DNA from: Hyphochytrium catenoides
Taxonomy: Eukaryota > Protista > Hyphochytriomycota
Length of the DNA: 64,000 bases
Assembly (NCBI GenBank): GCA_900088475.1
Contig: FLMG01001160.1
Span: 103,436 to 167,435, forward strand
Direction of reading: 5' to 3'
Part shown: positions 20,114-64,000 of the stretch, one piece after another
Position numbering within the stretch: the stretch's first letter is position 1
Layout of the letters: each line of letters opens with the position of its first letter
Made by a program: the position numbers and the translations under genes
Notes under the pieces: model-generated
The model's input: only the letters and a program-made list of their open reading frames with translations
What the model was told of the DNA's origin: nothing
Databases searched by the model: none

Positions 20114-20150
<37 letters not shown>

Positions 20151-20540
20151 CCCTCCTCTCTCTCTCTCTCTCTTTCTCTCTCTTTCTTTCTTTCTCTTCT
20201 CCTCTCTCTATAGCTCTCTTTCTCTCTCTTCCTCTTCCTCTCCATGTCTCTGTCGTTGGCTTGCCTCTTCCCCAGATATGCCTTCACTGTCAAAGGTTCT
20301 AACGCTTTTTGCTCTCTCTGTCTCTCCCTCTCTCCTCCTCTCTTTCTCTCACTCCCTCTCTCTCTGCTCTCTCTTTCTCTCTCTCTCACATTGCTCTTGG
20401 TCATCACGAAAGGGAGAGGAGAGAACAGTCTCTGGGTAGGTGACAGGAGAGCCGACACCTCATCAAACATGTGGCCTTCTTCCTGTTCCTCTCTCTCTCT
20501 CTTCTACTCTCTTTCTCCTCTTTCTCCCTCTCTCTTCTCA
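20113..20540. repeat. (CT)n-rich microsatellite tract upstream of PMA1
   Basis: Long ctctctct runs. Confidence 0.9.
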
Positions 20541-20736: not shown

Positions 20737-23700
20737 ATGGCTGCTGGGGGCGCCGAGACTTCCCAGAACTATCAGTCGATGAAGACTCCTGATGAATATA
20801 CCAATGCTGCTGGGCAGGTGGAATGGGGAAATGTTCCCCTTGAGGCAGCTCTTGAGAGGCTGCGCGCATCTAGAGAAGGTCTTTCAAGCGGCGAGGCCGA
20901 CAAAAGATTTGCAGAGTTCGGACCCAACAAGCTTCCTGAGGAAAAGGTCAACCCGCTGATGGTCTTCCTTGGATTTATGTGGAACCCCCTCTCCTGGGCT
21001 ATGGAAGTAGCTGCGATTCTCGCCATCATCCTTCTTGACTACCCAGACTTCATCCTGATCTTCTGTCTACTTCTGCTTAATGCGTGCATCGGGTTCTTTG
21101 AGGAGATGCAGGCTGGCAATGCAGTTGCGGCTTTGATGGACCAGCTGGCGCCTGAAAGCAAGGTTCTCCGCGACGGAGCTTGGACCAACCTTCCCGCTGA
21201 CCGCCTGGTGCCAGGAGACGTCATCCGTATTCGTCTCGGAGATGTCGTCCCTGCTGATCTTAAGCTCCTCGAGGGTGATCATGTTAAGATTGATCAGTCT
21301 TCTCTTACCGGCGAATCTCTTCCTGTCACCAAGACCACGGGCGATGAGGCGTACTCTGGTTCCGTTGTAAAGCAGGGTGAAATCGAGGCCGTCGTAACAG
21401 AGACCGGTGTGAACACTTTCCTTGGCAGAGCTGCCTCGTTGATGAACGATGCGGAGACTCACGGCAGATTGCAGCAGGTTCTGACTACGGTCGGTAACTT
21501 CTGTCTCATCTCTATCGTGCTTTGGTGCATCATTGAGATCGTCGTACAGTTTGCAGTCCGCAAGGACCAGAACTCATGCCGCCTTGTTGAGAATGGCTGC
21601 GAGGCTCTGCAGAACATCCTGGTTCCCATTGTCGGTGGTATCCCTGTTGCTATGCCCACGGTTCTTTCCGTCACTATGGCTATTGGTTCTACAAAGCTTG
21701 CCAAGCAGAGTGCCATTGTCACTCGCCTGACCGCCATTGAGGAAATGGCTAGCATGGAAATTCTCTGCTCTGACAAGACTGGAACTCTGACCCTGAACCA
21801 ACTCACTGTGGACCAGGACAACTTGATTCCTTACAACGGATTTTCCACCTCCCAAATTCTGTATGATGGTGCTCTAGCTGCACGTACGGAGAACAACGAG
21901 CCTATTGATGTGTGCATCCACGAGACTTGCCCTGAGAAAGATGAGCTGTGGAAGAAGCACACTCTGCTGCACTACACACCGTTCGATCCTACTACCAAGC
22001 GCACCATCGCCAAGATCAAGAACAACGAGACTGGCGTCGTCTTTAGGACTTCCAAGGGTGCTCCTCAGGTCATTCTTAACATGGACGTTAACGCTGACAA
22101 GCTGCGAGCAGACGTAGAAGACAAGATTGACGAGTTTGCTAGCCGTGGATACCGTGCGCTTGGTGTGGGCCGTGATGACTCTGGAGATGTCCCTCTTGAG
22201 GAGTGCAAGTGGAAGATGGTCGGTCTGCTCCCTCTCTTTGACCCTCCTCGCCATGACACCGCTGACACCATCAAGAGAGCTATTGATCTTGGAGTTATGG
22301 TGAAGATGGTTACGGGCGACCAGAAGGCCATTGCAGTTGAGACATGCCGCCAGCTTGGTATGCCAACCAACATCCTGGACACTTCCTTCTTCAATCAGGC
22401 GCCTCCTCCTGGAATTAGTCTGCCTGACCTTATCTACAACACCGATGGCTTTGCTCAAGTGTTCCCTGAGCACAAGTTTGAGATTGTGAAGCAGCTGCAG
22501 CTCCGTGGCCATGTGGTCGGTATGACTGGTGATGGTGTCAACGATGCACCAGCTCTCTCTCAGGCGAACATTGGTATTGCCGTCGATGACTCCACCGATG
22601 CTGCTCGTGCTGCGGCAGACATTGTCTTGGTATCTCCTGGTCTCAGCGTGATCATCGAGGCTATTCGTGGTAGCAGAGAGATCTTCCAGCGTATGAAGAA
22701 CTATGCAATGTATAGCATTGCCATGACCGTGCGTATTGTCTTCACATTCGGTCTCCTCACCGTCATCTGGAACTGGTACTTCCCCACCATCCTCATTGTG
22801 GTCCTCGCGATCCTCAATGACGGAACAATTATGACCATCGCTAAGGACAACGTGAAGGCAAGCCCCAACCCTGACTCATGGAAACTTAATGAGGTCTTCT
22901 TTGCGTCCATTAATTATGGGCTCTTCCTCATGCTCTCCACTGTTGTTCTCTTCTACATGGTGCATGATACCCAGTTCTTCTTTGACACCTCTTCCAACCT
23001 TGAGAATCTGTGCGTGGACTGCAACCTAAACAAGTGCAAGCAGTATCCTCTGCTGGCCAATGCACCCATAAAGCTGGGCATCGGAAGGGGGGAGTGCTGC
23101 TATAAAGATAGCGGCATTCTTAAGACTGAGGACTGTACTGTAGATCTTTGCAGAGCACGCATCAAGGCTCAGATAGCTGACTATACCACTCGTGAGTTCG
23201 CAAAGATCAATAAGCAGTCGTTCGATGACCTGATCGAGGAGGCTGCAGACTGGCCCGAGGAGCTTACGGATATGGATAGAGATATTAGTGGAGAGGATCA
23301 GTACAAGCTTTTCACCGCTCTCTATCTTGGCGACGCTAGCGACAAGGATGCTGCCACCGTCGTTGACCCTGCCCAGCCTATTGACGAAAGAAACACGAAC
23401 GGCGTCTCGTACTGCCAGTATCTCTGGGGCTATAGCAACTGGTACGAGCCAATGACTCGTAACAAGGAGATCATTGGTCCAGGCATTGAAGTAAAGGAAG
23501 GGTACATGCGTGGCCTTATCTACATGCAGGTCTCCATTTCTGGACAGGCGTTGATCTTTGTCACCCGTACTTCCGGTGCCAACACGTGGTTCTTCGCTGA
23601 CAAGCCATGCAACCTTCTTCTGATTGCCTTCGTTATCGCCCAGGCTGTGGCAACCGTCATTGGCTGGATTGGGTTTGGCGGTTATCCTAGCCCCAGGTTG

Positions 23701-23937
23701 TCGACTCTGGGTGCTGGCGGCCACTACACCGTTGTAGTCTGGCTCTGGGTCATCATCTGGCACTTCCCGCTTGATCTGATCAAGTTTATCTCGAACTATA
23801 TCCTTCGCAACGGCTCAAAGACTTATGTTAACCGCACTGCTTTCAACTCAAGAATCACTAGCGGCCACCCCAGCATGTCTCACCGCAGCATCTCCAACCG
23901 CGAGAGAGCTATTCGCGCTAGTCGCACCGTACAATAA
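20737..23937 (+). CDS. PMA1: Plasma-membrane H+-ATPase (P3A), intronless, 1066 aa from ATG 20737
   Basis: FMWNPLSW, LTGES, GGIPVAMPTVLSVTMAIG, DKTGTLT, KGAPQ, DPPRHD, MVTGD, GDGVNDAPAL, ILNDGT (proton-acceptor Asp) and QVSISGQALIFVTR. Confidence 0.97.
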   Translation: MAAGGAETSQNYQSMKTPDEYTNAAGQVEWGNVPLEAALERLRASREGLSSGEADKRFAEFGPNKLPEEKVNPLMVFLGFMWNPLSWAMEVAAILAIILLDYPDFILIFCLLLLNACIGFFEEMQAGNAVAALMDQLAPESKVLRDGAWTNLPADRLVPGDVIRIRLGDVVPADLKLLEGDHVKIDQSSLTGESLPVTKTTGDEAYSGSVVKQGEIEAVVTETGVNTFLGRAASLMNDAETHGRLQQVLTTVGNFCLISIVLWCIIEIVVQFAVRKDQNSCRLVENGCEALQNILVPIVGGIPVAMPTVLSVTMAIGSTKLAKQSAIVTRLTAIEEMASMEILCSDKTGTLTLNQLTVDQDNLIPYNGFSTSQILYDGALAARTENNEPIDVCIHETCPEKDELWKKHTLLHYTPFDPTTKRTIAKIKNNETGVVFRTSKGAPQVILNMDVNADKLRADVEDKIDEFASRGYRALGVGRDDSGDVPLEECKWKMVGLLPLFDPPRHDTADTIKRAIDLGVMVKMVTGDQKAIAVETCRQLGMPTNILDTSFFNQAPPPGISLPDLIYNTDGFAQVFPEHKFEIVKQLQLRGHVVGMTGDGVNDAPALSQANIGIAVDDSTDAARAAADIVLVSPGLSVIIEAIRGSREIFQRMKNYAMYSIAMTVRIVFTFGLLTVIWNWYFPTILIVVLAILNDGTIMTIAKDNVKASPNPDSWKLNEVFFASINYGLFLMLSTVVLFYMVHDTQFFFDTSSNLENLCVDCNLNKCKQYPLLANAPIKLGIGRGECCYKDSGILKTEDCTVDLCRARIKAQIADYTTREFAKINKQSFDDLIEEAADWPEELTDMDRDISGEDQYKLFTALYLGDASDKDAATVVDPAQPIDERNTNGVSYCQYLWGYSNWYEPMTRNKEIIGPGIEVKEGYMRGLIYMQVSISGQALIFVTRTSGANTWFFADKPCNLLLIAFVIAQAVATVIGWIGFGGYPSPRLSTLGAGGHYTVVVWLWVIIWHFPLDLIKFISNYILRNGSKTYVNRTAFNSRITSGHPSMSHRSISNRERAIRASRTVQ

Positions 23938-28600: not shown

Positions 28601-28990
28601 ACATATATGCCGCTCATTGTCAGCCGCACACCATCGCGAACCGACACATTGGTTCCAAACTCCAGACGATGTCTATAGCGGCTAACGTGCGAGCGGGTTG
28701 TAACGCCCCATTCTGATGGTTATGGGAGATGATCAGTGTGGCGATGTAAGGATGATGATCAGAAAGTGGAACCTGAACATCTACTATTGCCGCGTGTTCT
28801 CTTCCACGCGCCTTATACCTACTGTGTCCTGCTTCATGCTGCATCTCTCTACCGTTCCCTAGTTCTAGCCCGTAGGCAACATCACATAGACCTCCACGCA
28901 GCATTCGCCTATTGGCTTTCTTTCACTTCATTGTTTCCCATCACGTCGCCGACTTGGACATACCGCAACAACAGCCCCTTAAAGAAAGTG

Positions 28991-30867
28991 ATGTCGCTAT
29001 CCGTAGCAATACCACCACCTCCCCCTCGGCACGTTGGAGCCCCTCCTAGGGAGTCGATGACAGATGCGGAGCTTCTGAAGCTCATCTTGAACGCTAGAGT
29101 CTACGATGTTGCAATAGAGACCCCGCTTACCTTCGCCAAGAATTTGAGCGCTAAGCTTAATAACAAGATTTACTTGAAACGGGAGGACCTCCAGCCCGTC
29201 TTTAGCTTCAAGTGTCGTGGAGCCTTCAATAAACTAGTGAGCTTAACTTCTGAGGAACGAGCACGAGGCGTCATTTGTGCCAGTGCAGGTCAGTGGGACG
29301 TAGGCCCCAGCATTGAGTTATCGATGGTGACCTTCTTGTTTCTTCCTTATATCAGGCAACCATGCGCAGGGAGTGGCCCTGGCAGGAAAGACCTTGGGCA
29401 TAAGGGCAATCATAGTTATGCCAAAGGGAACACCAGCTATCAAGGTTAACGGAGTTCTGATGCACGGGGGAGAGGTCATTCTGCACGGCAATGATTTCGA
29501 TGAGGCCAAAGCTGAGTGCCTTCGTCTTGCGAAGGAGGGAAACTTCACCTTCATTCCGCCCTTCGACGATCCCCTAGTTATTGCCGGACAAGGCACATGT
29601 GGAATTGAGATTCTGAAGCAGATCAAGCATGATAGACTTGACGGGGTCTTTGCTCCGGTCGGAGGCGGGGGCCTCCTGGCTGGTGTAGCTGCCTACATTA
29701 AGCAAGTCAAGCCCGATGTACGATTAATGGGAGTAAACACTGTGGATTCTGATGGGATGGNNNNNNNNNNNNNNNNNNNNNNNNNNNNNNNNNNNNNNNN
29801 NNNNNNNNNNNNNNTCTGCGCTGCTATAAAGGATGTCTTCAACGACACACGGAGTATACTAGAGCCTGCTGGAGCCCTTAGTGTGGCTGGACTAAAGAGG
29901 TACGACTCCCTATAGACCGTTCTTGATCTCTTTAACCTGAGCGCCCTTGATCTCTATCAAGAACGATGCTTGATGCACTCGCTCAGTTAGTCTATCACCA
30001 ATTTTGAAGGGTGCTTTACTGGGAAACTGCATGCTAAGTGCCGCTAATAATCCTAGGTATCTGGCGTCCAATCCGCACATCAAGGACAGTGTCTTCGTGG
30101 CTATCACTAGCGGGGCCAACATGAACTTTGATCGTCTCAGATTCGTCGCCGATCGAGCTAGAATAGGGGAAGGATGCGAGGGACTTATCGTTGCGTCTAT
30201 TCCGGAAAGACGGGGAAGGTGAGCATGTTTCCTGTCCAGCCGAAATGTGAGCTGTCTCTTGTATAAACTGAGCTGACGGTCTTCCTCCAGCTTCTTTTCC
30301 AATCTCTACTCCGTAGTCTATCCTAGGAACATTACAGAGATCTCGTATCGATCCTCAAACCAGGATAAGGCATACGTCTGCATTGGCTTCGAGGTTACCC
30401 AGGGCAGAGCCGAGGTGCAGGAAGTGGTTCAGCAGCTTGAGCAGAAGCAGAGCATCAAGGCACTTGACATCACAGAGAATGAGATGGCAAAGACTCACAT
30501 ACGGTTCTTAGGGGGAGGACGAGCTCTGGTAAGCGACTATTTGCGCTAGGTTCCTGGCACAGAGCGTACGGCCTGACCTTCATCTCCTCTGGAACGACAG
30601 ATAAAAAATGAGCATTTGGTTCGTTTCACCTTTCCAGAGAGACCAGGCGCATTGGGAGACTTTCTTAAGAAGATTCCCAAGGAATGGTCCATAACACTCA
30701 TTCACTATCGAAACCAGGGCGGAGACGTCGGCCGCGTACTTATGGGCTTCCAGTTGGAGGACGGTGATGAAGGAAGACTATCTACTTTTCTAGAGACTAT
30801 CAAGCTTCCTTATGTCGATGAGACAAACAATGAGGTGAACGATTTCTTTCTTAGGAGCAAGCTATGA
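28991..30867 (+). CDS. ilvA: Biosynthetic threonine dehydratase with C-terminal ACT-like regulatory domains (multi-exon)
   Basis: [16 protein letters not shown] (PLP Lys), ASAG|[49 protein letters not shown] and HYRNQG. N gap at 29761-29814 removes part of the CDS. Confidence 0.95.
29761..29814. other. Assembly gap (N) inside the ilvA CDS; other gaps at 7285-7320, 31407-31471, 42118-42175, 44479-44486 and 56385-56425
   Basis: Runs of n in the sequence. Confidence 0.99.
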
Positions 30868-31858
30868 AGCCAACCAGGCGCAGCAGCCAGTGAACTCTCA
30901 GATATTTGCTTCCCATGTGTTGTCTTTTTCCGTGGCCTGGACTGACAGGAGTGATGGCCTGGTCTCTTCTAGAGGCTAAAGTGGTGTCAGCCCAAGATGA
31001 GAGATATTTTTAATGAGAGCACCTCATGCGGTCCTGCAGTCTGGACTTTCCCAACAGGGAATTGTCTAAGGCTTTCTGAACGTCTGAGGTTTCCTGCCCA
31101 GTTTTAAGGTCTTCATGCAGACCATGTGTTCTCAGAGTAAGATGAGCCGAGGGCGGATTATGCTTTGTACGGCAACCATCTGAAGCTGCACTACATCGCT
31201 AACGATCTATCGCGGGAGGAGGAGTAGGACTAGAGCCTGATGACATGGCTTCTTATACTAGTTCCTTATGTGTTAGCTATCTCCACTAGCAGTTAACCAC
31301 ATGACCAGGACTGTCTTTCATCGTTGAACTAGTTTGCTGCCTGGGGTAGAGATCAATCTCATGCAAGGAGACAGGCAAGATTGACTGTGTGTTGGACGTC
31401 GTAAGCNNNNNNNNNNNNNNNNNNNNNNNNNNNNNNNNNNNNNNNNNNNNNNNNNNNNNNNNNNNNNNNNNAAACAAGGAAATGTATGATGAGGGTGACA
31501 ATCACTCCTTGTCGCACACTCTGACTTTTGACAATAACTCTCTTCTCGTTCTGTCATCTCTCCTTCTCTCTGTCTCTCCGTTTTGTCCGTCTTTAACGGT
31601 CTAGAGTTACCTCTCTCTCGCGCTCGCTCTCGCAACCTGATCTCTCCTGCTATATCTTTGTAGTTTCCATTCTCAGCATAGAGAGAAGCTTGTAACATCT
31701 TTCACGGGCAAACCTCAGCTCCTCCTTCTCATCTCCTGAGCTGTTCTTGCCTTCTTATCACGATCACACTTCTCTTTTTATAACATAGAGCACGCATGGA
31801 CTGAATGAGCAGAGAGAGCGTTAGCTCCTAGTATCAGTCACTAACAGGTTGAGGCGAG

Positions 31859-32530
31859 ATGAAGGCGAAGACGTGGAGTACCTCAGCACCGAAGTCGCTT
31901 GAGACTCTTAGGCGTCAAACAATAGAGCGTCTTCAGAGAGCAGGAGCCGCGGGAGAGCTGCATGATGTGATAGTGGTGGACAGAATTAAGCTTGCAAGCT
32001 CCGCGACATCAGCCGAGCAGCTTGAGTTTCTTATTCATGACCTCCATGATAATGGACAAGGAGATATGCACAGGGCCGTGACGGCTGTCCCGGTTGACGA
32101 AGAGGATGCTTCGACCGCGACTGCAACCTACGCCGCAGCCATTCCTATCTCGGCACCTAGCCAGAACTCCATACGGGAGCAAACCCACGCTAGAGATAAC
32201 GCTACGGCTCAGGTGCACTTCTCACTAATGGGAGGAGTAACAAGAAGTGGCAGGTTCCTGTTGCCTAGGAAGATGGTAGTATGCTCTCTCATCGGTGAGA
32301 CGAAGCTTGACTTACGGGACGCAACTTTTCATTCCGGAGTTTCCGAGCTTGTCGTGTGCACGATCATTGGCAGCACAACGGTACGGCTGCCGCCTTATGT
32401 GAAGGTAGTCACCTCGGGCTTCACGGTGCTTGGCGGCACAAAGTGTCTGAAGGATGATGCCCCTGATGAGGCTGAGTACGTGCTGAAGGTGGTGAAGGTG
32501 GGGTTACTAGGCGATTTCAACATCACGTGA
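31859..32530 (+). CDS. DUF1707 (SHOCT-like) plus LiaF-C/DUF2154-like beta-rich domain protein, intronless
   Basis: N-terminal RRQTIERLQRAGAAGEL...DRIKLASSATSAEQLEFLIHDL resembles DUF1707. C-terminal FSLMGGVTRSGRF...GETKLDLRDATF...GSTTVRLPPYVKV...LGG...GLLGDFNI resembles the C-terminal domain of bacterial DUF1707 proteins. Recognised from memory of the family, not by search. Confidence 0.8.
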   Translation: MKAKTWSTSAPKSLETLRRQTIERLQRAGAAGELHDVIVVDRIKLASSATSAEQLEFLIHDLHDNGQGDMHRAVTAVPVDEEDASTATATYAAAIPISAPSQNSIREQTHARDNATAQVHFSLMGGVTRSGRFLLPRKMVVCSLIGETKLDLRDATFHSGVSELVVCTIIGSTTVRLPPYVKVVTSGFTVLGGTKCLKDDAPDEAEYVLKVVKVGLLGDFNIT

Positions 32531-33093: not shown

Positions 33094-36000
33094 TTATGCA
33101 TCAGATTCTTCGTAGCTTTTCTCTTTAGCTGCTCTCTCGCGGGACAAGGAAGATATCCGGCTCTTGACTTTGCCCAACCAACTAACAGTGGACGAGCTAT
33201 TCTCTTCAGATACACATATTCTTGCTTCTGCTTCTACGGTGGGCATATCTGCTGATATTGCGTAGCCGTAATCACTTTCTTCTGGGCCATACTGCTCCTG
33301 TGGCAAGAGAAGCAGGGTTTAAAGTTCATTCGACTGTTCCTTTGCCTCATGACGGCTACCTGCACGATCTCCGCCAAAGGAGCTCCTTTCACAGAGCTGG
33401 CTCCCGTAATCATCGGATCTAAGCAAGAATGGGCTGGATCTTTGACTGCCTGTAACAGCCGAAGCCCGCAGTGTTAGTCACGCCAGACTTCACTAGGAAA
33501 GACGGTCAAGGAGGAGTAATTCACAAGTCCGATGCCCAAAAATTAGGGCTAAGGAACAGCATCTAAGAGACGGATCACACTCCAAGGAGATCGACTGCAA
33601 AGATGTACCTCTTGAATAATATGATGGAGCTTCGGTTGGAACTCTCTAACAGCGCATTTGTAGGCGTAATCCTTCAATAGGGTGAGGAAAGGAACCAAGA
33701 CGAGCGCCATCCAGAAAGTGGGAGACATCACAAGCAAGGGAAAGATGTTGAACCTGAAAGGAGGTTCACGCCTTAGCAAGTTACGGAGAGCGCTTGACCA
33801 GCTGCCCAAAACTGACTTCCTTCAGTCCGATTTAAGGGTAATCACCCTACCCCACTTGCTCTCATCAACTCAACTCCATTACTCCCTCTAGTCTTTCTTC
33901 TGCTCAAAGCTCCCTTCTCGCTCTTTAAAAGTCTGCTCAATCTCTTGCTCTTCTACTTCTTACCAGTCCAGATCCCAAGCCGGTGTATTGCTGAGAATGA
34001 AGGCTGTGCCGAACCAAAGCAAGACCGACATAATGATAAGGGAAATCTCCATAATGGTCCAGCGGTGCTGGTACAGAGCAATCTGGACAGAGACAGAGGA
34101 AAAGCCACTCAGATGTGCCGGACGCGAAAGGCCCATAAAAGAAAGAAGAAGAACATTGGTTAACAGAGCCCTTGTGGATAAACGTGAATAGATTGGCGAA
34201 AGGACTGGCCTCGAGGGGTTTTTGGTCACGCCCGAGGAGTCATGGCCAAGAAAGGGCATGAGTACCCGATAAGAAGCGCAGACGACCAGTCATCGAGCGC
34301 GCGGCGCATAAGATCGGGATCCGTTTTGCAGGAAGCGGAATGTATGGCTTTAGCAGAGGAAATCTATGAAAGTGGAAATTCACCTTGCAATTGACTACAA
34401 TGATCACCATGGTGAAGGCCAAAGCTCCGTACTCCCACATGCCCAGCAGATGTCCATCACCCAGGCTTGCCCTTAGGGCAAACACTGCAACCATAAGAAC
34501 AAGGGCGGACTCAAAGAGAGCACCGCTGATCCATCCCCAGAACACCCTACGTTTTGAGAGCACGAGGAGTAAAGATAATGATTGAGATTAGGGGTTCGAA
34601 CCTAAAACACTCAGGTTTCGGCCCGGTCATGCAAAGGAGACAGGACCAGAGTTCAGACTAACAGAAAGCAGATGTAGAAGGTTAGAGTAAGCAGCCAAAG
34701 TATTTTGAGGACAGAAGGCTTAGATATATTGAGTTGTGACAAAGTCTATTGTATGAGAGGTCTGAAGCGCGCTCTTACCAGCGCGTGAAGAACTCATTCC
34801 GTATCCCTGGGGTGTAGAGCTTTGGAAACAGCTCGCAGGCAAAGGCAGGAAGGTCCTGAGAAGTGGCGACGGAGATTGAAGAGGTAGGGCAAACCAGTTT
34901 AAGAGACCAACGAAAGGACGGATGAATGTCACCAAAGGGGCAAAGAGGCTATTAGTCTCCAATTGTACTTGTGGCAAAGTGCTTCTCAGGCGGTACTCAC
35001 CTCATCTAGCACTCCGAGTGTAAGGATGGGCAGGGCCGTGTAAAGAGTGTTATAGAGATTCACCGCTGTCTCGTTGTAGAATTTCTGTCCCGACATCCCA
35101 TTGTACCAGGAGTACCAAAACTGTGTCATCACCTGAGAAATAGTGCCCGTCGACACAAAGAAAAAGCGGGCATGATCACCATTAGCATCTAGCTGCACGA
35201 CGCGATCATTGAACTTTATAACTAGAGCCATGGCAGACTCCCTTGCGGCTAGTGGTGGTACACTGGGGCCCAGACTCTGATCAAAGGAAGCAAAGGAAGT
35301 TTGAAGCTTTCAAGCGTTTCCACTTTCACAGGTGGACGTAAAGAGATAGGGGATGAGTAGGGCACCTGTCTTCAAGAAGACGACTACCAAAGCCGATATC
35401 CCTACCAGTAAGATGTTCTTATAAAAGATGTACGGGACCAACGTAGCAAGTCGGCGATAGTTCCATCGCCCGTGCACGAGTAACAGGCGACGGAGGAAAC
35501 GAAATTGTGCGACAGAGAAGTCACTAGAGTTCGCCGCCTGGGCAAACAAAGTCAGCCACCGGGGTGTACCGTTGCCCGTCGAAGACAAAGGGAAGTGGAG
35601 AAACAGAAATGAAGGAAAGTAAGGAATACAGGAGCTACGGCTCTAATAATCTGGAGCTTCTAGGGTAGCAAGAAAGGGAATAAGGACAGGAACGCTACGG
35701 CATCATGGCAAGAGCTCGTCCCACCTGCAGCCCTTCATGGCCGCTTATCCCTACGCCAATGTGGGCCACTTGAATCATAGGGACATCATTTGCCCCGTCT
35801 CCAACGGCAAGAGTGCGACCTGGGCCCTTCTTACTCAACTGAGCCAAGTGAAACGCGAAGAGAATTGAGCGAGATGCAGAGGGAGCGTTGCTGCAGGGCA
35901 CCGAGAAAACACTCCGGGGAGCAAGACACGAAGAAAGTTTGAAAAAGTACCCTAGAACAGTATTAGGGAGACAAGAGCTAGATAGAGGACAGTGAACTGA

Positions 36001-39000
36001 AAGCTAAGCTCTCCTCCCATTTGGTTGCCCTCTCTCCATTGACTGCTTCATACTCTCCGTCCTGCCTGTGTGACATCTCTGCAGTGAAGTATGTCATTCT
36101 TAAAGCTATGGAGTCTACTAGCTCACCTTTATCATTTGTACAATGTTTGACTTCTGGGCTGGGCTGAGCCTGCAAGCAATAACGACATCTACTGCCTCTG
36201 TCAGGAGAAAGAATTTGGGCATTATCCACGGTTGCAAGGCGTAGTCAACAAAGTCTCCGTCTAGCACAATGGCCACAGGGCTACAGCCTGATCGAAGAGT
36301 TAGTCAAACAGCAAAAGATGAGAGACAAAGAGAGCAGAAAGATTGCCTAGCAGTAAAGCTAAGCACATAGAATATATAGTGCAAGAGAGAAAGACAGATA
36401 AGAGACCCAAGCATTATATACATGGCAACAAGCAAGAGTGGAAGAGAGCGAACACGGATTCGAGAGCTCCCACTATACTCAGCATCAATCTTAGGGTTGA
36501 TGAGAGCGGGCGGAGCCGTCAAGGTCAACAAGATGGGGTCGAGGTCAACAAGATGGGGCCAAGGCCAACGTTGGAGGAGAAGATGGCTACCTCTCTCGTC
36601 TCCGATCAGCGAGAGTGCGGTGAAACTCTTCCGATGGTGCAGCTTGGTTAGATGCTGGCAGATGTCACTGAAAGCGTCCTCAGCCTGCCGATATCGTGAA
36701 CCCAGCAGATCTACGCGTCCAGTGTTGCTATCCAGCAACTAGAAGTGAGGGAAAAAGGCAAGTCAGATTGACGGGAAAGATAATAGAGGAAATAAAGTAT
36801 CTTAGTTAAGAAAGCTTTCACAGAGACTGTCACACTCCATTGGATGGTAGAGCCTAATCCTCCATCTTCCTCTCCGTCTGGAGGCTCTCCTTTACTCTCT
36901 ACCTTCTTTGCGCCTTGCGAACTGTTCCTTCCCCCATCTCCTCCCCTACAGATCTACATACAAAGCTTTACCTTGCTGAGTGTTGCAATGTTGACGGCAG
37001 TATCTGAGTGGTCGCCAGTAAGCATCCATATCTTGATTCCGGCAGCCTTGAAATCCCTTATGGTCTCTGGTACTCCATCCTAAGATGAGAATTTAAAAGA
37101 GCCAGTAAGTTAAGAGCTCCAAAATGGACGAAAGAAGGGTCGAGGGAAGGAGGAAAGGCTAAAAGAGGAGCCCGGCTACGGATGCCCACCTGGAGGCTGT
37201 CTTCTATCGCTGTCAAGCCCACTAGCATGAGGTCAGACTCCAGCTCGTCCATTAGCCTATCAATGCTATAAGAGAAAGTGAGTAGACGAATCCCAGATAC
37301 AGGATGGCGTCTACACGGCACAAGAGGGTAGGCCAACAGCCACTGCTAGAACAGCAAAAAATGGAAAGCAATCTTATATCCTAGCACATTTCTCCTCTTC
37401 TTCTATCGTTGTTTCCCCCCATTCTCTCTGTCGGAAGAACTTCAGCACTCAAGAAGAAAGGAAAGTGATGGCGCAAGTAGGATGACGCAACGGGCTCGTT
37501 TTTTGTCCCAGTGGGTGAGTCTTACTCGTTGGGCTGTCCACTATTCTTCTTTTGAATTTGCTGCATACTGGTGCTTGCGACTCTGTATCGCTGTCGCCAG
37601 TCTTCAAAGACTCTCTCCTCAATCTCGCGCTGCGCAAAGATGAGCTGGGGAAGAGAGAACCAAGAACGGAAGCAGAAAATGTCAACATCTGACTATTTGA
37701 AGTGGAACAGCAGGAGAGCATACTGGACACAGGACAGAAAGCAAGGAGGACAATGATAATGAGATCCCTTTCTCCTGTTTCTAGCCTACGACTTTTATCC
37801 TCTACCTCCCTAATATCCTGTCCACATACCGTTCGAAGACCGTCCTTGGCGAAGGTGTGCAGATGTCCCATGGTCTTGCTGCGAAGCTCTTCATTTTCTG
37901 GTGATGGCACCAGTCTAGGGACTATCACACTCTCTGCTCCCTTGCATATAAGCTCAATCTTTCTTGTGTGAGGATGCCTGATGACTACTGACATCTTCTT
38001 TCTGCCGCTTGTGAACTCCAAAACCTCCAACACTTCCAGCTGAATAAGTTCCCGATCCTCTTCCTTGACGTCTTCCCTCCGTCCATCTGGGAGACCCTCG
38101 CTCAACCTGTCTCTTCTTTTCTCGATAGTGATTATCCCAGGCCGTCTGTCAATGAACTCGACTCCCATATGCTTGGCTGCGGCTACTAGGGCTTGCTCAT
38201 CCGGAGAAGAGGCAGAAAGACTGATCGCTCCATTCTCAAGCTATAAAGAGGTGTGAAGACGCAAGGCAGTGAATATATAAGCAAGAAGTTGTGGGATAGC
38301 GAGATGGAGCCTTGGTTTAGGATAAGACAGGAGAGTGTGTAGACAAATGAAGATGGCTACCTGCTCCGAGATGACTGTGTGACAAATACTGAGGTAAAGA
38401 AGGAAATCTCTTATCTTCTTGCCATGGTCCTCCCCGGATGCTCCCTGAAGCATCAAGAGACAAGGTAAGGGAATATGAACAGAACTAAAGCCTCGATGGT
38501 CTAACATTAACACCAACACTGATTAGGTGCGATAGGTGCAGACTGGTAAAAAAAGAGTGAAGCACTCATGTACCTGTGCGTCAGCCAAGATGCTAGGGTC
38601 AGAGAACTTGACATATCGACTGCCCGATCTCCATCTTAGATCCTCTTGGTCTCCATAACATTTCCCTAGAAGAATATAATAGTCAAAGGAGTGAAGAATG
38701 GCACTGAGTAAGTAGTGCGACTTCGGCGCCTCCTTCTCCATCTTCATGTCTATTTCTACCTATTCCTCGTCAGACGAACTCTCTCCATCCCGCCCTTGCA
38801 CCCACTTTGTCTTAATAGGAGGTCAGAAGCGAAGGGTTACCATTTACAGAACATTTGCGGAACTGCATAAGGTTACATGTCAGGGTTCCGGTCTTGTCGG
38901 TGAAAATGTGAGATACCTGCAAGCAGGGAGAAGGGCGAGTGGAGATGAAAAGAGAAGAAGAAGTGTTAGGCGCCTTGGAACTTCTGTCATCGACGCCAGT

Positions 39001-41611: not shown

Positions 41612-43093
41612 ACCCTCCCAGCGCTCGAGCGGGAATATGCGGAGATAGTCAAGCTGACGTTAAGGGCCACACTTGAAGTTCCATTAGGCAGTACTCCGTG
41701 GGTTCCATCAACCCAATATAACTCTCAATAAGGCAACAGCAGTGCTGACCCCTCCATCCAAACGCTGTTCTGGAGAACCTTCAGCTTAACGAAGAGGAGG
41801 AAACGGTCCAGCCCAAGAGCGAGCGTCGGAGAGACGAGTCTCTTTACTTGACCATGAGCAACGCTCCCGCCCTGCGTCTGTAGGTTGGTATTTGGTGACT
41901 AAGTTCCGGAGCTAGCGTACCGCTGTCAGGCGAAGGAAGCAAGGGAAAGAAGCTGCAGAGTCTGATGGGAAGAAAGCCTTCCTTGTAGGACTATACAGTA
42001 CAGCCAGGAGGTCTATTGTGCATGAAGAGAAACCCAGACATCAAGAAGCAGACAAAAAAATAAGAGGAAACAGTTAAGAGTCAGAGGAGCAACCAGAGAG
42101 GAGTGACACCGTGCGACNNNNNNNNNNNNNNNNNNNNNNNNNNNNNNNNNNNNNNNNNNNNNNNNNNNNNNNNNNGAGATTGACCTTTCAGAGTTTGGGG
42201 GAAGACGCTGGCCCATCACTACACATTACGCATATAGAAAGAATAAATACGAAATAATGGCACAATAAAAGCACAGGGTTAGGAATCAGTACGCGTCTCT
42301 GTTCCTCTGTACTGTACCCTATGTTCCTCTCAGAAGGACATGTAATCCCTGTTTTGGCTCTCTCCGAAAGTTGATCTCTATGAATTTGAGTATTGCCTAC
42401 GATAGCTAACAATTTCTTTTGGGTCTTTCCAAGCAAGGTGGCCGTTAACGTGATCTTACTGGAGTACATTAATATAATCAGGAGGCTCTGTCTCGCAAGT
42501 CGTATTCATTTGTTGGGTCTCTCTCTCTCTCCTCCTCTCCTTCAGTGTGTCTCCTCTTGATAGCACGCTAATGTCTATCTCTTGAGACACTCTGTCTCTT
42601 TGATCGCCTCTCTTGGGTTCTCTCTCTTGGGTCAGCACAAAGTTACAAGGTTGCTCTACCTCTTTTCCTTTTTGAGCTTCCTGTTTATCGGCCTCGCTTA
42701 GAGTCTTGCTCTCTCTGCAGCCTGCAGGCGGTGTAGACAGACACATGGACTGCTTCTTGAGTCTCTGCTCTCCTCCCCGTGCATCACGGCCGTGGTCACT
42801 CCTTCCCCATCTGGGTCTCGTGACGCTCTTTAACCAGTAGTAAACTACTGTTCTACTGCAAGCCAGAGTGAGTGCAAAGTCACGGGCGTCAGGCGGTCGT
42901 CAACTCCCCAGGCGTTAGGCGGTCGGCAAATTGTCCAACGAGGGAGTAGCTTTTTTTACATGGCTTGTATAGGGAGTGCGCAGATGTACTAGCACGGCCA
43001 GGGCGATAGGGATACTTTAGACAAAGAGGAAGCTCAGGTCAGGATGGGTAGAGGATAGTGTATCTGCCAGTTCGGACTGTCCTGCCCCGAAGG

Positions 43094-49183: not shown

Positions 49184-50452
49184 ATGGGGTCATCTCGCAC
49201 TGCAAACAAAATAATACTCTTCTTTACCCTTTTGGCGACCCTAACCCCTTCATGGGCGCATCAAGGCGATTTTGGAAGAAGCCACGATCATCACACCATA
49301 GCGAGAGACCACAGAGGACGAAGCACCTTCGACGCAAACACGGAGCAGAATAAGGTTATTAGTAGTCAACTGGAGATGGTGCGCCGGTCACCAAAGACTT
49401 GCCCCTATGATAGCATGGGAGTTAACCAGAATGAGTACTTTGAGTTCAAAGGGAATCAGCGTATCTATTTCTGCCCTATGAACCACTTGCCAAGCTTTGC
49501 AAAGGATCCTGCCAAGACGTTCAAGTCCATCGAACCCTTCAATCCGTCTGGGGGGGAAGAGCTGCCTAACGATATCAGGTGCCCCATTTGCGACATGACC
49601 TTGGACAGCCAATCTACCTACGATATACATTTCCATAATGGCAATCAAGCGGTGCACTTTTGCAGCGAGTCCTGTGCCAAGCAATTCTGGGATGATCCAT
49701 TGAAGTTCGCAGCGGATGACCCCATGCCTCACGCATCAACGGACCAGTCTTCTGAGGGCTTCTGCAACGGGTTGCCGAGCATCATGTTCTTGGGGTTCAC
49801 ATGGGTTGCTCCGGACACGGACTGCGTGTTGCTGTGGTTGCCTGGCTGGATCCTGGATTCGAGAGTCAAGATGCTCCTTGGACTGCTCACTGTCTTCACA
49901 TTGGCATTTATGAGTGAGGGACTGACCAGCTACCAGAGGTACTTAAATTGGCTTCGAAGAAATGCAGAGGCCGATATGTTAAAGGACGAAATAGTATGCA
50001 ACCCTGGCGTATCTCAGTCGCTGCAGCAGAGCTTACAGGTGTCGGAGCGCACTAACCTTCTCATCTCTTCCACAAGGTCTGGCACCTCCAAGATCAACGC
50101 CGAGTCGGTCGGAAGGCATAGGATACTTATTTCCGAGTGGAGGGTCTTCAAACGACTGAACTTCCAGCAGCGACTTGCGCTCTTGCGCCTCTCTCTGCTG
50201 CACGGCTTACGGATTCTTATGGCGTATCTCTTGATGCTTGCAGCGATGACCTACAGCATCTCAATGAACGCGGCTATCGTCTCTGGCTTCATCGTAGGAC
50301 ATTACTTCTTTAGCGACGCAGGCATCACTACCGAGATAGAGGACAAAGATCTGGAGGATCCCTCTGGGAGCAGCAGCAAGCGGTATCGTGGAGCGAGCTT
50401 CAACTATGATGAAGTGGCTGACTTTGCTGATCCTTGTTGCAGCAATGCCTAA
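49184..50452 (+). CDS. Ctr/SLC31 copper transporter with signal peptide, His-rich segment and two TRASH/YHS-like domains, intronless
   Basis: Ctr motifs MFLGF...LLWLPGW, MSEGL, YLLMLAAMTYS (MxxxM), GFIVG (GxxxG) and C-terminal DPCC. N-terminal CPYDSM...IYFCPMNH...FAKDP and CPICDM...VHFCSESCAKQFWDDP. Confidence 0.88.
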   Translation: MGSSRTANKIILFFTLLATLTPSWAHQGDFGRSHDHHTIARDHRGRSTFDANTEQNKVISSQLEMVRRSPKTCPYDSMGVNQNEYFEFKGNQRIYFCPMNHLPSFAKDPAKTFKSIEPFNPSGGEELPNDIRCPICDMTLDSQSTYDIHFHNGNQAVHFCSESCAKQFWDDPLKFAADDPMPHASTDQSSEGFCNGLPSIMFLGFTWVAPDTDCVLLWLPGWILDSRVKMLLGLLTVFTLAFMSEGLTSYQRYLNWLRRNAEADMLKDEIVCNPGVSQSLQQSLQVSERTNLLISSTRSGTSKINAESVGRHRILISEWRVFKRLNFQQRLALLRLSLLHGLRILMAYLLMLAAMTYSISMNAAIVSGFIVGHYFFSDAGITTEIEDKDLEDPSGSSSKRYRGASFNYDEVADFADPCCSNA

Positions 50453-58563: not shown

Positions 58564-60898
58564 TCATGTCTCCGCAAGATGGGCTTTCAAGTTAGCAATA
58601 CGCTGACGAATCTGATGGATAGAGACCCATTGCAAGAGGCACTTTTCTGAGTTGGGGCACTTGCAGGAGATGTCATAATGTCGGAGACAGGAGATTGCAT
58701 CTGGATCACATCTGCAGATGACTCCCGAAAGGAAGCAGGAGTGTTTACAGCGCGTGCATTGACGCCAGTCATCTTCTCGCATAGCATCCTCATCCATTTT
58801 CCACTGACCCATAGGCATGATGGCCATGTTCTTCACCCCATCAGCAATCACTTGCCTCCGGTAGTAATTCTCCTCTCTCTCCATACTTTCTAGCTCCTCG
58901 AGCAATGTCCGAACGGAATCTGCAGGGTACTCATCAATAGAAGAAAGGATAGTGAAAAGCAGCCTCTCTTGGCTGAAGACACTTCCTCGTCCAAAGGCTC
59001 GATATTTTTCATCGCACACTCGGCCAAACTCCACCCAGTCCATTGGCGCGAAATTGACTGCCTCCGCACAGTTGAAGCCCGTGTTGAGACCAGCGTGGTA
59101 GGCCCTGGGAAACGTGATAACAAAGCAACCTTCCTCTTGCACCGCACGATAGACTTTTACCTGAGGATCAATACCGGAAGTCATTAGACTTGCACGTATC
59201 AGGTAGAGGTAGGGATTCTCTTGCTCTACTTTCCCCTTTTGCTCTGGTCTCCCATCGTCCTCTCTATGGCTATGTCACCTGCTACGCCGTACTATTTGCG
59301 ACGGAGCTTGAAGCTTGACTCAGACCTTACCTTATGTTTTGTGAGGTCGGTCGGGTGGATCATGGTTGTTAAGTGGAACATCAAGTCCGGATCCTCCTTG
59401 AACCTTTCTGGCACCGTCCGTCTTAGCGATCTTTCAAAACTCTCCGCATTGTCCGCTGGGATGCCATACCAAATCTTCGGAGCTCCACTGTGCATATAAT
59501 TGATCGAGTAGAGAAAGTTGTCTTCGGTGTGCCAGCAGAAGGCAGAGAATATCATCCCGATATATAGCCAAGGTACAGTTACCCCGTTGATGCGGCTCTC
59601 GATGTGCTTCAGCAATGAACCTCGCCACTTTGAGATATTGTTAAGGTTCCAACCAGACTCGTGATAGTAATCTGATTGTTGAAAGAGGCCCTCGACCACA
59701 GTCCTTGGAGAGCATGGCTGCTTTCGATCCATTGGGGAGGCTTTTCGGGGAAAACCACTACCTAAGCTAGAAGTGCTGATATCGTTCCCATAGTCAACCT
59801 GATAGCACGAAGAATATGAGTGAACCGTCAATGTTTGGCGCAGTAGAACAATTTTCTGAATAATTGAATGCAAAGTGGCTACTCAATAGCGAAACGATGC
59901 TTTATCCCATGGCCGAACATGTCGGTTCTTACTCTTCTCTGCCTCGAGCTCTTTCACCTACCTGGATTTCCTCGCAACCAGTCTGCACGATTTTCCAGAA
60001 GCTGTCTTCAATCTTTTCTGTGGTGAGCTCGTTCAACTTAAGATTATTCTTCCTGGCCCAGCTCTGCAAAAAAGTGTCTGCCATCTCCTTGTACTCCTTG
60101 AAGCTGTACACTTTGCCGTCTTCAAAGCTAATGCCTTCTTGGAGCCTATGAACCTGAAACGATATCAGAACCGTGATAGTCAGGATCCAAAATTACTAGC
60201 TGGGATACTCCGTCTGACTCCAGAACCTTCCTTTCTCTAGCTCAATGTTTAGTTCCCTCATATTATATACCTCTAACTCTACTCTTGACTCGTACCATTT
60301 GCTGCTTGGTCTCAAACTTTGCTTTACTTTGCGTGTCCAAAGCCAGCTTTGGGGCCCAGCCCGCAGGAGGGACTATGATGCAGATACCGAATTTTTCTCC
60401 TTCACCCTTGATGCTATGGATGTACTTTAGGGGATCTGCAAACTCTTCGATGGTGGGCCTATGAATTAAGGAGTCGGTCAGTACTGTTGAGGCAGTGGCA
60501 TCCTTTTATGAAGAAAGACCAGAGTAGAAGAAAAGCGGCGGACAATAACGGTACAGGTAAGTCTAGCGCAACGTGAAACGTAGGATCAGAGGACGCAGTT
60601 TCTAAGCATGTTACCTAAAGGTTGGGGCGGTGGGTATGTCTACTTTTTCTCTCTGCGTAACAATCTTTGAGTTGGCTAGCGCCATTTGTAGCATCCTCTC
60701 CTCTCGCCTGTCTAGTACCACGGAGTCCCAATAGTTGGCTGCCGGTCTGCATCTTGTCCGTTTGGGCCTTGGCGCCGAGGTGTCCACTGGCGGAATTGTC
60801 TCTTGTTGTTTCTTGCGTCTTCGGTTCCCTGGAGTCTCTTCCGCTCCTGCCACAGGCTTCTGCCCCATAGCAACATTTGTTTCTCGTCCTGATGCCAT
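58564..60898 (-). CDS. KDM5/JARID1-like histone demethylase (JmjN + JmjC + C5HC2 zinc finger)
   Basis: JmjN APTFR|PTIEEFADPLKYI...GICIIVPP. JmjC WLYIGMIFSAFCWHTEDNFLYSINYMH, PKIWYGIP, FPRAYHAGLNTGFNCAEAVNFA. C5HC2 QCTRCKHSCFLS...CRC...CLRH...CKC. Confidence 0.92.
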
Positions 60899-61399
60899 TT
60901 GAGAAAATTGATGGTTGGGTTTCCTTTCTTCTCAAGTCTTGATCGAGCTGGAGCAGTAGTACTCTGGCTGCCTGGAATCTAATCTTTAGCCGCGGCTCTT
61001 AAGGGTAGTAGTAACAGTGAAGGTATCTACTCTGTGGCTATTATAATAATGGTGTTGCCTCGGAGGAGAAGCTTCGAAGAAGCAGCCAAGACACGCGGAA
61101 GAAAACCTAGAGATTCATTGATGACGAGAAGCATCAAAACAACTTCTCTTCTAGAATCAATGGAGTACGTAGAGAGGGAGGAGATGATCAATTATTGGTG
61201 GAGGATAGAACGGTAGTGTGATGGGGTGAGGAGTAGATGCACAAGCAGGACCAAGAAGAACAGAAGGGTACAGGCGTTGGTAAGGCTGTGTAAACAATGA
61301 ACAGTAACCCAAAAGACAGCAGCAGTGATGTTGTCTCCTATAAAGATAGCAATAAAATAAAGAAAAGAAAAAGTAGGAACTAGTAGGAAGCGGTGATGA

Positions 61400-61895
61400 G
61401 GATGGTGATGAGGAGTAAGAGATGCTTGAATAGAGTAGAAGAGGAGGAAGAGGAATAGCGATGATGATGAGGAACAAGGAAAGCTTCGATCTTCCCTGGT
61501 TGTTGAAAACAGAGGAAAAAGGAAAATGGCTGAGGAGAGAAGGAGGAGACAGGTAACTAGGAAGAAAAACCAAGTAGTAGAGAAGAGGGAAGATCCAAGA
61601 ATGACGGATGACGGACCATGACCGAATGGAGAATAAGGAAGGGAAAGAGGAGGAGGGAAGAAGAGTGGAGAAGAGAAAGAGATGTAAGTAGGGAGGAGAA
61701 ACCAGGGGAGGGAAGGAACAGAGAGAAGCCAGGCTGACGCCGGCAGAGAGGAAGCCAGAGGAGAGAGGAGAGAGAGGAGAGGAAGGTCCGACAACAGGTA
61801 AGCAGGTGGCCAGCTATTTGCCATAAGAGGGGAGAGGAGGGACAGGTCGGAGAGACAGAGAGGAAGATGAGGAGAGAAGAAGAGAGGAGGCTCCA
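61400..61895. repeat. Purine (GA/GGA)-rich low-complexity tract upstream of the JmjC gene
   Basis: Runs of gagaggaga/gaagagga. Confidence 0.75.
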
Positions 61896-64000
61896 GCTGT
61901 TGATGAGAGCTGACCTCCACCTGCCTTCCTGTCCTTTATTTGATGCTAATAAAAAGGAGGCAAGGCCTCACAGACAGAGAGGTAGAGGTATATAGCACAT
62001 GTGCTGAGAGATGTCCCACGGCACCATTCTCCAGGCTTAAACCTAGAGTATCTAGTGCAGGAGCAAGACAGAGCAGCTAGAGAGCAAGATAGAGTTGCTT
62101 TGAGATGCCAGGAAACACAGAAAGTGGCACAAAGATGAGGTGATGGTTTTATTACACTCTAACGGCTAGGGGGGCCTCTGCCAAGAGTAGTAATACAATG
62201 TCAGATTACGTAAACCCAGAAAGCTCTTGCTTCCGCCCTCCCATTCCTCGTAATGTAAAATAGTATGCCGGAGGCCATCTGATGAGAAGGGTTACAACAG
62301 TGCTTTTATTCATTTATTTGCTTTTATTGATTTATTTATGATTTATTGTGAGTCTAGTTGAGTCAACAAGACTCTGTTGTTACAAAAAGCTTTGAAACGG
62401 AAGAGTAGGAGGTGTTTTCTCATCTTTTTCTTTAGAAAACGAAACTCCTCCTTTCTTTTATCATCATGATTATTGATCCTGTAGCAGGAGTGATGATTGA
62501 GGGCCTTGCTGCCTTCCGTGTTGTTGCTGTTCGTCTGGCTCCTTCTCTGATTGATGATGTTATTCACTGCTGATTATTGAGGACTTCACTATGATTGTCC
62601 CTGGCAATATGCTGCGCTGCTGACAGCGGAGGGGAAGAAGGAGATAAAGGCCTCAAGACTAGGTAGTAGCGCTCCTTGTTGCCTCGTCCTCTTCTTTTTC
62701 TTCTTCATCTCCTTCTCCTTCTTCCTCCGAGTCTACTAGTAGATGGATAGTTCAACGAAATGGCACTTATAAAGAGAACGGGATCCTCCTCCTCCTGCTC
62801 CTCATCTTCATCAGAAGTTGATTGCTTTTCCTCAGCGAGCTTCTATATATCATGATGGAAGAAGAAAAGGAGCAGGAGATGACGACGAGGATATCCTTGT
62901 ACAAAGATCGTTGCTCCTCCCCTCATCCGCAAAGAAAAGGAGAATGATATGACCCCGGAGAAGGATTGATAAGCTGGCTTCTTTATTAGGATCTTCTATT
63001 CAATAAAGACCAATTCTCTACTCTCTGTCATCGATCATCACCACCCGCATGTTCCGCCGAGTATTATGCGGAGGAAGAAGACGTCGTAGAGCCATAAATA
63101 ACAGCAGGTAATAAGAATAAGCTGGTCCCCAACAAAGCCTATGATGAAAAACACAAGATATCCATTGCAGCAATTCTTTGTTGTGTGCATTGATGAGCTC
63201 TAGCAGTGCCCTGCAAGAAAGCCGTTCACATTAGAATGAAGAAGATTTGCCCAGCCGCAGAAGAACAACGGCGACGCCCCCAGAAGAAGATTAGCGGAGG
63301 AGAAAATAGTTCAGTCCGCCTAGAGCACCCAGCGTGCTTCACACGTCACCTTTGCTTTTTTTGATATCATAAGAAGGGTCTGGGTAAGGTAGCTCCTTGT
63401 ACTTTACAAGAAAGAAAGTGGTTTTTCTTCCTCTGGATTCATGTCCCGGTGCTATTAGTAGTAGAAGCGCCGACCACCATTTACAAAAGAAGAGGGATAG
63501 AGCGGTGTTACTCCACCACCACCACCAGTAATAGCAGGGCGGGGACCACCACCACCTACATATTTTTATAAAAACTGGATGGAGGAGTCTCTAGTCGGTA
63601 CCCAGAAAAGGAGGGGACAGAAGAGGTTTCTTATGATGATGACTACTATTGATTGTCGGACCACGGTCCAGGACGGGAGCCAAGTAATAAGCAAAGCATG
63701 GATGATGATGGCCGCCGCGCGCCCTACTTCCTCTGCATTATTATTAGTTAGTTTGCTGCTGTGTAGATGAATAATGATGAAGGCGGCGGCGGCGATCGGC
63801 ACCACGAACCCCACAGCCTACTGCCATTGATGGCGGTGATGTCGCTTTTTTGTTGTGTAGTGATGATGATAGCGTCCGTGGTTCTCACTCTATCATTTTC
63901 CTTTTCAGTTCTTTCCATCACGATGATGATCATGCTCCTGCATCAAGCCGCTGTAAGTACTAGTAATTTATAATAATTAATCGAAGGAACTCCTGTTCTT

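Follow-up and report, generated by a model that had tools for sequence, protein, structure and literature searches.

A bacterial-type DUF1707 and LiaF-C/Toastrack-like gene in the genome of Hyphochytrium catenoides, a candidate for old horizontal transfer

A small single-exon open reading frame (ORF) in the genome of the stramenopile Hyphochytrium catenoides encodes a protein of a family that we otherwise encountered in bacteria, in which a DUF1707 SHOCT-like domain is followed by a LiaF-C/Toastrack domain. We consider it likely that this ORF is a real and intact nuclear gene and that it came, by horizontal transfer into an ancestor of this stramenopile, from a bacterium that carried the actinobacterial-type subfamily of these small proteins. 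The ORF lies in the middle of a stretch of 64,000 nucleotides of contig FLMG01001160.1, hereafter the window, whose relevant features are listed in Table 1. A sequence-only reading of the window had proposed the gene as a candidate for horizontal transfer, and this proposal is now supported by, among other evidence, the bacterial kinship of the protein, the gap-free linkage of the gene to a eukaryotic neighbour and its host-like composition.

Table 1. Features of the window that bear on the origin of the ORF (positions are those of the window; aa, residues of the ORF product).
Feature	Position	Strand	Evidence
Threonine dehydratase (ilvA-type) gene, intron-containing, extent partly mapped	28736..30867	+	PALP and Thr_dehydrat_C matches, separate exon ORFs
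Scaffold gap (65 N) that separates the ORF from the ilvA side	31407..31471	.	N map
Upstream region of high pyrimidine content, putative 5' leader and promoter	31472..31858	+	Base composition, sequence inspection
Complete single-exon CDS, DUF1707/SHOCT-like and Toastrack-like protein	31859..32530	+	ORF list, collinear alignment, profile score
SHOCT-like (DUF1707) helical domain, aa 14-65	31898..32053	+	PF08044 match, AlphaFold helices
Flexible linker with many Ala, Thr and acidic residues, aa 66-117	32054..32209	+	AlphaFold, alignment
C-terminal beta-rich domain (LiaF-like_C, half-size Toastrack beta-helix), aa 118-222	32210..32524	+	PF09922, AlphaFold, Foldseek
P4-type phospholipid ATPase gene, intron-rich, convergent, mapped part	33549..38168	-	Exon-ORF domain matches

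The ORF begins with ATG and runs without a break for 223 codons to a TGA stop, and inspection of the sequence places another TGA in frame three codons before the start codon. Its extent as one exon of 223 codons, as first read from the sequence, is confirmed by the ORF list and by the alignment with bacterial homologues, in which the product and 35 bacterial relatives are collinear all the way between the first helix and the final strand. The window holds no second copy (paralogue) of the ORF that we could find.

The product matches the Pfam model DUF1707 (PF08044) at residues 18-62 (E 2.6e-4, 21.4 bits against a gathering score of 27.6) and the model LiaF-like_C (PF09922) at residues 139-201 (E 6.1e-6, 26.5 bits against a gathering score of 29). 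The two matches stand in the expected order and both fall under the gathering scores, and therefore we base family membership on a profile of the family and on the fold rather than on Pfam alone. The precomputed C-terminal Pfam matches of bacterial family members are likewise labelled 'weak' or 'faint', and all 14 of the 14 nearest-clade members matched both Pfam models (E of 0.01 or better). Scored against a profile built from the 35 bacterial relatives, with the ORF itself left out, the product reached 147.7 bits in a single alignment spanning residues 10-222, while 500 shuffled versions scored at most 7.2 bits against the same profile. In the alignment of the ORF with these relatives, every invariant and near-invariant position of the family is kept in the ORF, including R18, L25, R42 and D61 in the DUF1707 region and G131, G146, D151, G171, P178, G187 and G192 in the C-terminal domain. 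The C-terminal motifs of the family are a repeated G-G...(L)D(L)R, VPP and LGG; several glycine positions, which are GG in most relatives, are altered in the repeat motifs of the ORF (GE, GS, GD). On this evidence the product belongs to the bacterial family of small DUF1707 SHOCT-like and LiaF-C/Toastrack proteins. The order of domains given by the sequence-only reading, DUF1707 and then LiaF-C, thus holds by profile and fold, although neither domain reaches its Pfam gathering score.

The AlphaFold model, computed with an alignment as input, places three helices at residues 14-30, 36-47 and 52-65 (block pLDDT 93-97) and five long strands in residues 118-222 (most blocks with pLDDT of 95 or higher). 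The linker between these domains has no secondary structure in the model (block pLDDT 49-62), and both its length and its sequence vary among relatives. When the C-terminal domain was modelled by itself, it was predicted with a pLDDT of 93.2 and a pTM of 0.84. Foldseek found one significant match for this model in the PDB, 4QRK (E 3e-4, probability 1.0; TM 0.54 on the query and 0.31 on the target), and the other, weak matches are beta-solenoids. Since only about half of 4QRK is covered, we take the C-terminal domain to be a short beta-helix, roughly half as large as a Toastrack domain. Searches of PDB sequences with the single sequence and with a profile returned nothing useful. 4QRK is named as an exemplar of Toastrack (DUF2154/DUF4097/DUF2807) in a comparative-genomics paper on the PSP system, which also describes fusions of SHOCT-like (DUF1707) and Toastrack domains in Actinobacteria (PMC11237479). 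No hydrophobic segment was detected in the protein, whose highest 19-residue Kyte-Doolittle mean is 1.2, and as modelled the product is a soluble protein of two domains with no transmembrane segment. In one bacterial relative (P0002, encoded at L001 654-1505), a single DUF1707 domain is followed by the C-terminal beta-rich domain twice in tandem, indicating that this domain is modular.

The relatives of the ORF are distant. A word-indexed protein search with the whole ORF gave no match, because the relatives share too few exact 5-mers with it. When 1.84 billion proteins were searched exhaustively, 714 relatives emerged at E 1e-3 or better, 16 of them at 1e-10 or better and none at 1e-30 or better. 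The best match (E 1.4e-15) is 48% identical over 90 residues and no match exceeds 48%; many matches cover about residues 10 to 220 of the query, and full-length identity to relatives is 25-35%. We inspected the best 150 of these 714 matches and the best 120 of the 953 matches of a profile search, most of which are unnamed metagenomic proteins. Named relatives in the inspected part of the exhaustive search come from metagenome-assembled genomes (MAGs) of Mycobacteriales, Myxococcota and Kofleriaceae, and those in the inspected part of the profile search with the nearest clade come from Acidimicrobiales, two Streptosporangiaceae and Actinopolymorpha cephalotaxi. All relatives that have a name or an inspected genomic context are bacterial. 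The 13 homologue contexts that we fetched are all compact and bacterial in style, with a GC content of 68-73% in the five that were measured. When one genome for each bacterial or archaeal species was scanned for a motif, 478 loci were recovered, the best 80 of which belong mostly to Gemmatimonadota, with Polyangia, Kofleriaceae and one member of Akkermansiaceae, a spread that is biased by the motif-selected bacterial query.

In a maximum-likelihood tree of 72 rows, the family splits in two with a support of 97/95. One side has 27 rows and includes the ORF as its basal branch, and its named members are all Actinomycetota; the other side, with 45 rows, is made up of Gemmatimonadota, Myxococcota and Verrucomicrobiota among its named members. 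The grouping recurred, with a support of 97, in a quick tree of 104 rows. The tree, a check that had been suggested together with the proposal of transfer, therefore places the ORF with the actinobacterial-type subgroup, and the accompanying statement that the family is typical of bacteria and notably of Actinobacteria agrees both with this position and with the bacterial identity of the named and contextualised relatives. The terminal branch of the ORF is about three times as long as the median (2.0 compared to 0.59), and so its exact placement is uncertain.

These results bear on an alternative in which the gene was inherited vertically, with the family being either ancient in the lineage or acquired far earlier, by an ancestor of Pseudofungi or of stramenopiles, and with eukaryotic relatives that escaped the searches through divergence, lack of annotation or absence from the collections. 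There is some room for this alternative: the proteins of the host itself are outside the collection, in which neither the ORF product nor two single-exon proteins encoded nearby have an exact record, so that close relatives of the host may be missing as well; a divergent eukaryotic relative could be present among the matches ranked 151-714, which lie outside the inspected set; and the ORF branches basal to the actinobacterial-type group and not within it. However, the collection includes oomycete, EukProt and many other eukaryotic proteomes, and broadly distributed eukaryotic homologues, which the sequence-only reading had named as evidence against transfer, did not appear: there was no eukaryotic relative among the best 150 of the 714 exhaustive matches, and neither a eukaryotic name nor a EukProt source among the best 120 of the 953 profile matches. 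Moreover, a bacterial or metagenomic source was found for the ten matches with the most eukaryote-like amino-acid composition, and compact bacterial contexts for three of these. Scans of metagenome contigs and viral contigs yielded no close relative of the ORF, and the family motif was not found in viral contigs; these scans therefore lend no support to a viral vector and reveal no environmental orthologue. We conclude that vertical inheritance is quite improbable and that acquisition from a bacterium describes the relatives better.

The bacterial contexts also show how the family is organised. Across the 13 contexts, of which three were added from actinobacteria, we found no conserved operon partner; a histidine kinase adjoins the family gene in none of them (0/13), and response-regulator genes occur only in L003, several kb away. 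The bacterial members are thus stand-alone genes, which means that the transfer of a single gene could be functional. A hemerythrin gene adjoins the family member in two unrelated loci (L003 6597-7094 and L008 1822-2223), overlapping the stop codon of the family member in L003, and in L092, a single case, the neighbours are the lipid genes PAP2 and LPG_synthase_TM. The sample is too small to call either of these an association.

In its composition, the ORF resembles the other genes in the window. Its GC content is 0.538, its GC3 0.574 and its codon adaptation to those genes 0.73, and the latter two lie within the ranges of the neighbouring genes (0.50-0.63 and 0.69-0.82, respectively). We infer both the direction of the transfer and its age; the transfer would be old, because the gene now fully matches the host in composition and codon use, the leader is in the host style and the branch is long. 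That the ORF is intact after complete amelioration argues for purifying selection.

The same observations weigh on the possibility that the ORF is integrated in the genome but is a non-functional relic, unexpressed and drifting. The long terminal branch, which could mean relaxed constraint, and the changes at several positions that are GG in relatives would both be expected of such a relic. On the other hand, full amelioration implies a long residence, and yet the frame of 223 codons is intact, the family-invariant residues are all kept, the profile score is high and both domains are modelled with a pLDDT of 93 or more. The retention of frame, invariant residues, profile score and fold is not expected of a sequence that has drifted over that time, and we regard the relic as quite unlikely and the ORF as probably a gene maintained in its new genome.

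On its 3' side, the gene runs on without a gap to an intron-rich eukaryotic neighbour. The window contains six runs of N, of which the nearest to the ORF ends 388 bp upstream of its ATG; the next downstream begins at 42118, and the sequence from the ORF stop to that point is free of N. This leaves the ORF on an unbroken stretch of 10.6 kb, which also carries the exons of the P4-ATPase; in this gene, at least 5 exon ORFs (33549-35585) make up the PhoLip_ATPase_C domain and a Cation_ATPase exon lies at 37449-38168. This agrees with what had been noted at the outset, a gap about 390 bp upstream and a contiguous 3' side. The threonine dehydratase gene upstream is on the same strand as the ORF, and its link to the ORF spans the scaffold gap, the one weak point in the case for integration. 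It has PALP exons in 28736-29915 and a Thr_dehydrat_C exon at 30616-30867, with a canonical GT..AG intron (29290-29356) that splits a conserved motif between SAG and NHAQG. The exons of these neighbours were searched singly. The exon ORFs and the intron bear out the position between an intron-containing ilvA gene and a P4-ATPase gene that was originally described for the ORF.

The upstream region of the ORF is also of host type. On the sense strand, C+T makes up 62.7% of the 330 nt before the ATG, compared to 50.2% of the whole window, and the region upstream of a single-exon H+-ATPase gene in the same window is 59.4% pyrimidine, with TC/CT runs and long TC arrays. The leader of the ORF is thus in the host style and resembles that of the H+-ATPase gene, as the description of a host-style CT-rich leader had it. 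It should be noted that in this leader (31689-31847) an AG comes after a branch-point-like CTAAC, the motif closing 11 nt short of the ATG, and that there is a GTAAC about 155 nt upstream; judging from these letters, the motif could end a putative intron in the 5'-UTR, gained after transfer.

The remainder of the window is eukaryotic in its gene content, with PPR and PDZ genes and genes for a Ctr copper transporter, a plasma-membrane H+-ATPase and a JmjC demethylase of the KDM5 type. The PPR gene (36-917) and the KDM5-type JmjC/zf-C5HC2 histone demethylase gene, which is divided into exons on the minus strand (58564-59873), lead us to assign the scaffold to a eukaryotic nucleus. The small N gaps of the window and its exons of about 200-300 bp agree with the published assembly of Hyphochytrium catenoides, which consists of Platanus scaffolds with 3.64 introns per gene (PMC5795050), and agree less well with the HiFi contig assembly of Pirsonia. 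The H+-ATPase gene is a single exon of 1066 codons (20737-23937) amid this intron-rich region and is preceded by a TC/CT microsatellite of about 400 bp (20115-20502). In Peronosporales, Albuginales, Pythiales and Saprolegniales alike, the orthologues share 62-66% identity with its product, whose only closer matches are two environmental proteins (84% for P0165 and 82%). Since this product is equally distant from the oomycete orders, the host is a stramenopile near, and outside, the sampled oomycetes. The Ctr copper-transporter gene (49184-50452) also appears to be a single exon; its N-terminal extension of about 200 aa has repeated Cys/His motifs (FCP...CPICDM..., HFCSESC) that resemble metal-binding modules, and in Pfam this extension has only a weak zf-met match. 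Towards the end of the window (61001-62000), the plus strand has a strong excess of purines (GC skew +0.45, AT skew +0.41), and an ORF of 242 aa on the minus strand of this region has no Pfam match and looks like low-complexity noise.

An assembly artefact, in which reads of a bacterial contaminant were joined to a eukaryotic scaffold, could account for the proximity of the 65-N gap and for the lack of introns in the ORF, but it is very improbable indeed, given that the ORF has 54% GC with host-like GC3 and codon use whereas the measured bacterial homologue loci are far richer in GC, that with no match above 48% identity no known bacterium could have supplied the sequence, that the 3' side runs gap-free into P4-ATPase exons with spliceosomal introns, and that both flanks of the ORF are in the CT-rich intergenic style of the host.

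With the ORF taken as a resident, transferred gene, its function can be approached through its domains, and here our confidence is much lower than for the transfer. We propose that the product would act as a stand-alone, membrane-proximal adaptor or scaffold. The SHOCT-like module of three helices would provide anchoring close to the membrane or self-assembly, a disordered linker of about 50 residues would join it to the beta-helix, and the short right-handed beta-helix would offer flat sheets as a surface for protein docking. Such a role would be non-enzymatic, would need no partners of the LiaS/LiaR type and might plausibly lie in membrane or cell-envelope homeostasis, as appears to be the case for the bacterial relatives. 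Expression of the gene and the location of its product close to a membrane are likewise inferred, and a role in the sensing of stress or antibiotics in the protist is speculation.

The proposal draws on suggestions made for the individual domains and on two phenotypes from transposon screens of a mycobacterial DUF1707 protein. It has been suggested in the literature that SHOCT-like modules serve to tether or assemble proteins on the inner side of a membrane. The flat sheets of Toastrack domains have been proposed to dock proteins (PMC11237479). Rv0966c of Mycobacterium tuberculosis is a DUF1707 protein with published phenotypes, which we liken to the ORF product by its DUF1707 domain alone: rv0966c mutants import less fatty acid (PMC6368401), and a mutant of the M. 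avium homologue is hypertolerant to three antibiotics (PMC8557931). These phenotypes, which are the only experimental hints on DUF1707 proteins that we found, may point, loosely, to envelope or membrane physiology.

On a bolder reading, the DUF1707-Toastrack family would have in the ORF product its first member from a eukaryote, and a stramenopile with a cell wall and an osmotrophic way of life would have domesticated it as an adaptor for membrane or cell-wall stress. We found no earlier mention of the DUF1707 family in a eukaryote in the consulted papers that mention DUF1707, and the supplements of the Hyphochytrium genome paper make no mention of DUF1707, LiaF or PF08044. We consider this reading in its entirety rather unlikely; if it were true, a piece of the bacterial envelope-stress toolkit would have been re-used in a 'pseudofungal' lifestyle without its bacterial signalling partners. 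The preferred interpretation, an old acquisition of an intact gene, matters in other ways. The locus provides a clean, well-linked and fully ameliorated example of transfer in a poorly sampled lineage near the oomycetes, and it places a very abundant and functionally obscure bacterial family in a eukaryotic cell without partners of the LiaSR type, where it could help to show how these proteins act by themselves. Should related taxa prove to have orthologues, the gene would give the lineage a datable marker.

Among known systems, the closest to the ORF product are the bacterial proteins with DUF1707 and LiaF-like_C domains, which have the same length (~200-270 aa), domain order, motifs and predicted fold, have no transmembrane segment and are encoded by stand-alone genes. 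Examples are two proteins from MAGs, P0001 (Mycobacteriales) and P0016 (Acidimicrobiales), and P0382 of Actinopolymorpha cephalotaxi. The ORF differs from these in its place in a eukaryotic nuclear genome, its host codon use and its long branch, and its product lacks the basic C-terminal tail of many bacterial relatives.

LiaF (also VraT or YvqF) of Firmicutes is an inhibitor of the LiaS/VraS kinase in the response to cell-envelope stress. It has in common with the ORF product the C-terminal beta-helix family (PF09922; Toastrack in PMC11237479), although the domain in the ORF product has only about half the length of 4QRK. The N-terminal LiaI-LiaF region of four transmembrane segments is absent from the ORF product, and while LiaF has LiaSR as its partner, the neighbours of the ORF are ilvA and a P4-ATPase. 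The label LiaF-C used by the sequence-only reading is therefore apt for the C-terminal beta-helix but does not extend to the transmembrane half or the two-component partners of LiaF. Having neither, the ORF product is not LiaF. A true LiaF is also excluded by the NCBIfam model LiaF_C_term, against which the product scores 23.1 bits where the cut-off is 57.

The movement of a Toastrack-family domain from bacteria to eukaryotes has a precedent in human FAM185A and other eukaryotic Toastrack proteins, which have been described as bacteria-to-eukaryote transfers (PMC11237479). FAM185A is absent among the matches listed for the ORF, whose architecture of a SHOCT-like module and a short beta-helix is that of the DUF1707 family. 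Gene transfers from prokaryotes to Pseudofungi are reported in parts of the oomycete literature on horizontal transfer (PMC5795050), and these represent the same kind of event in the same recipient lineage, with a different gene family. A bacterial gene in a protist is thus an event of a kind that is already well documented and not surprising.
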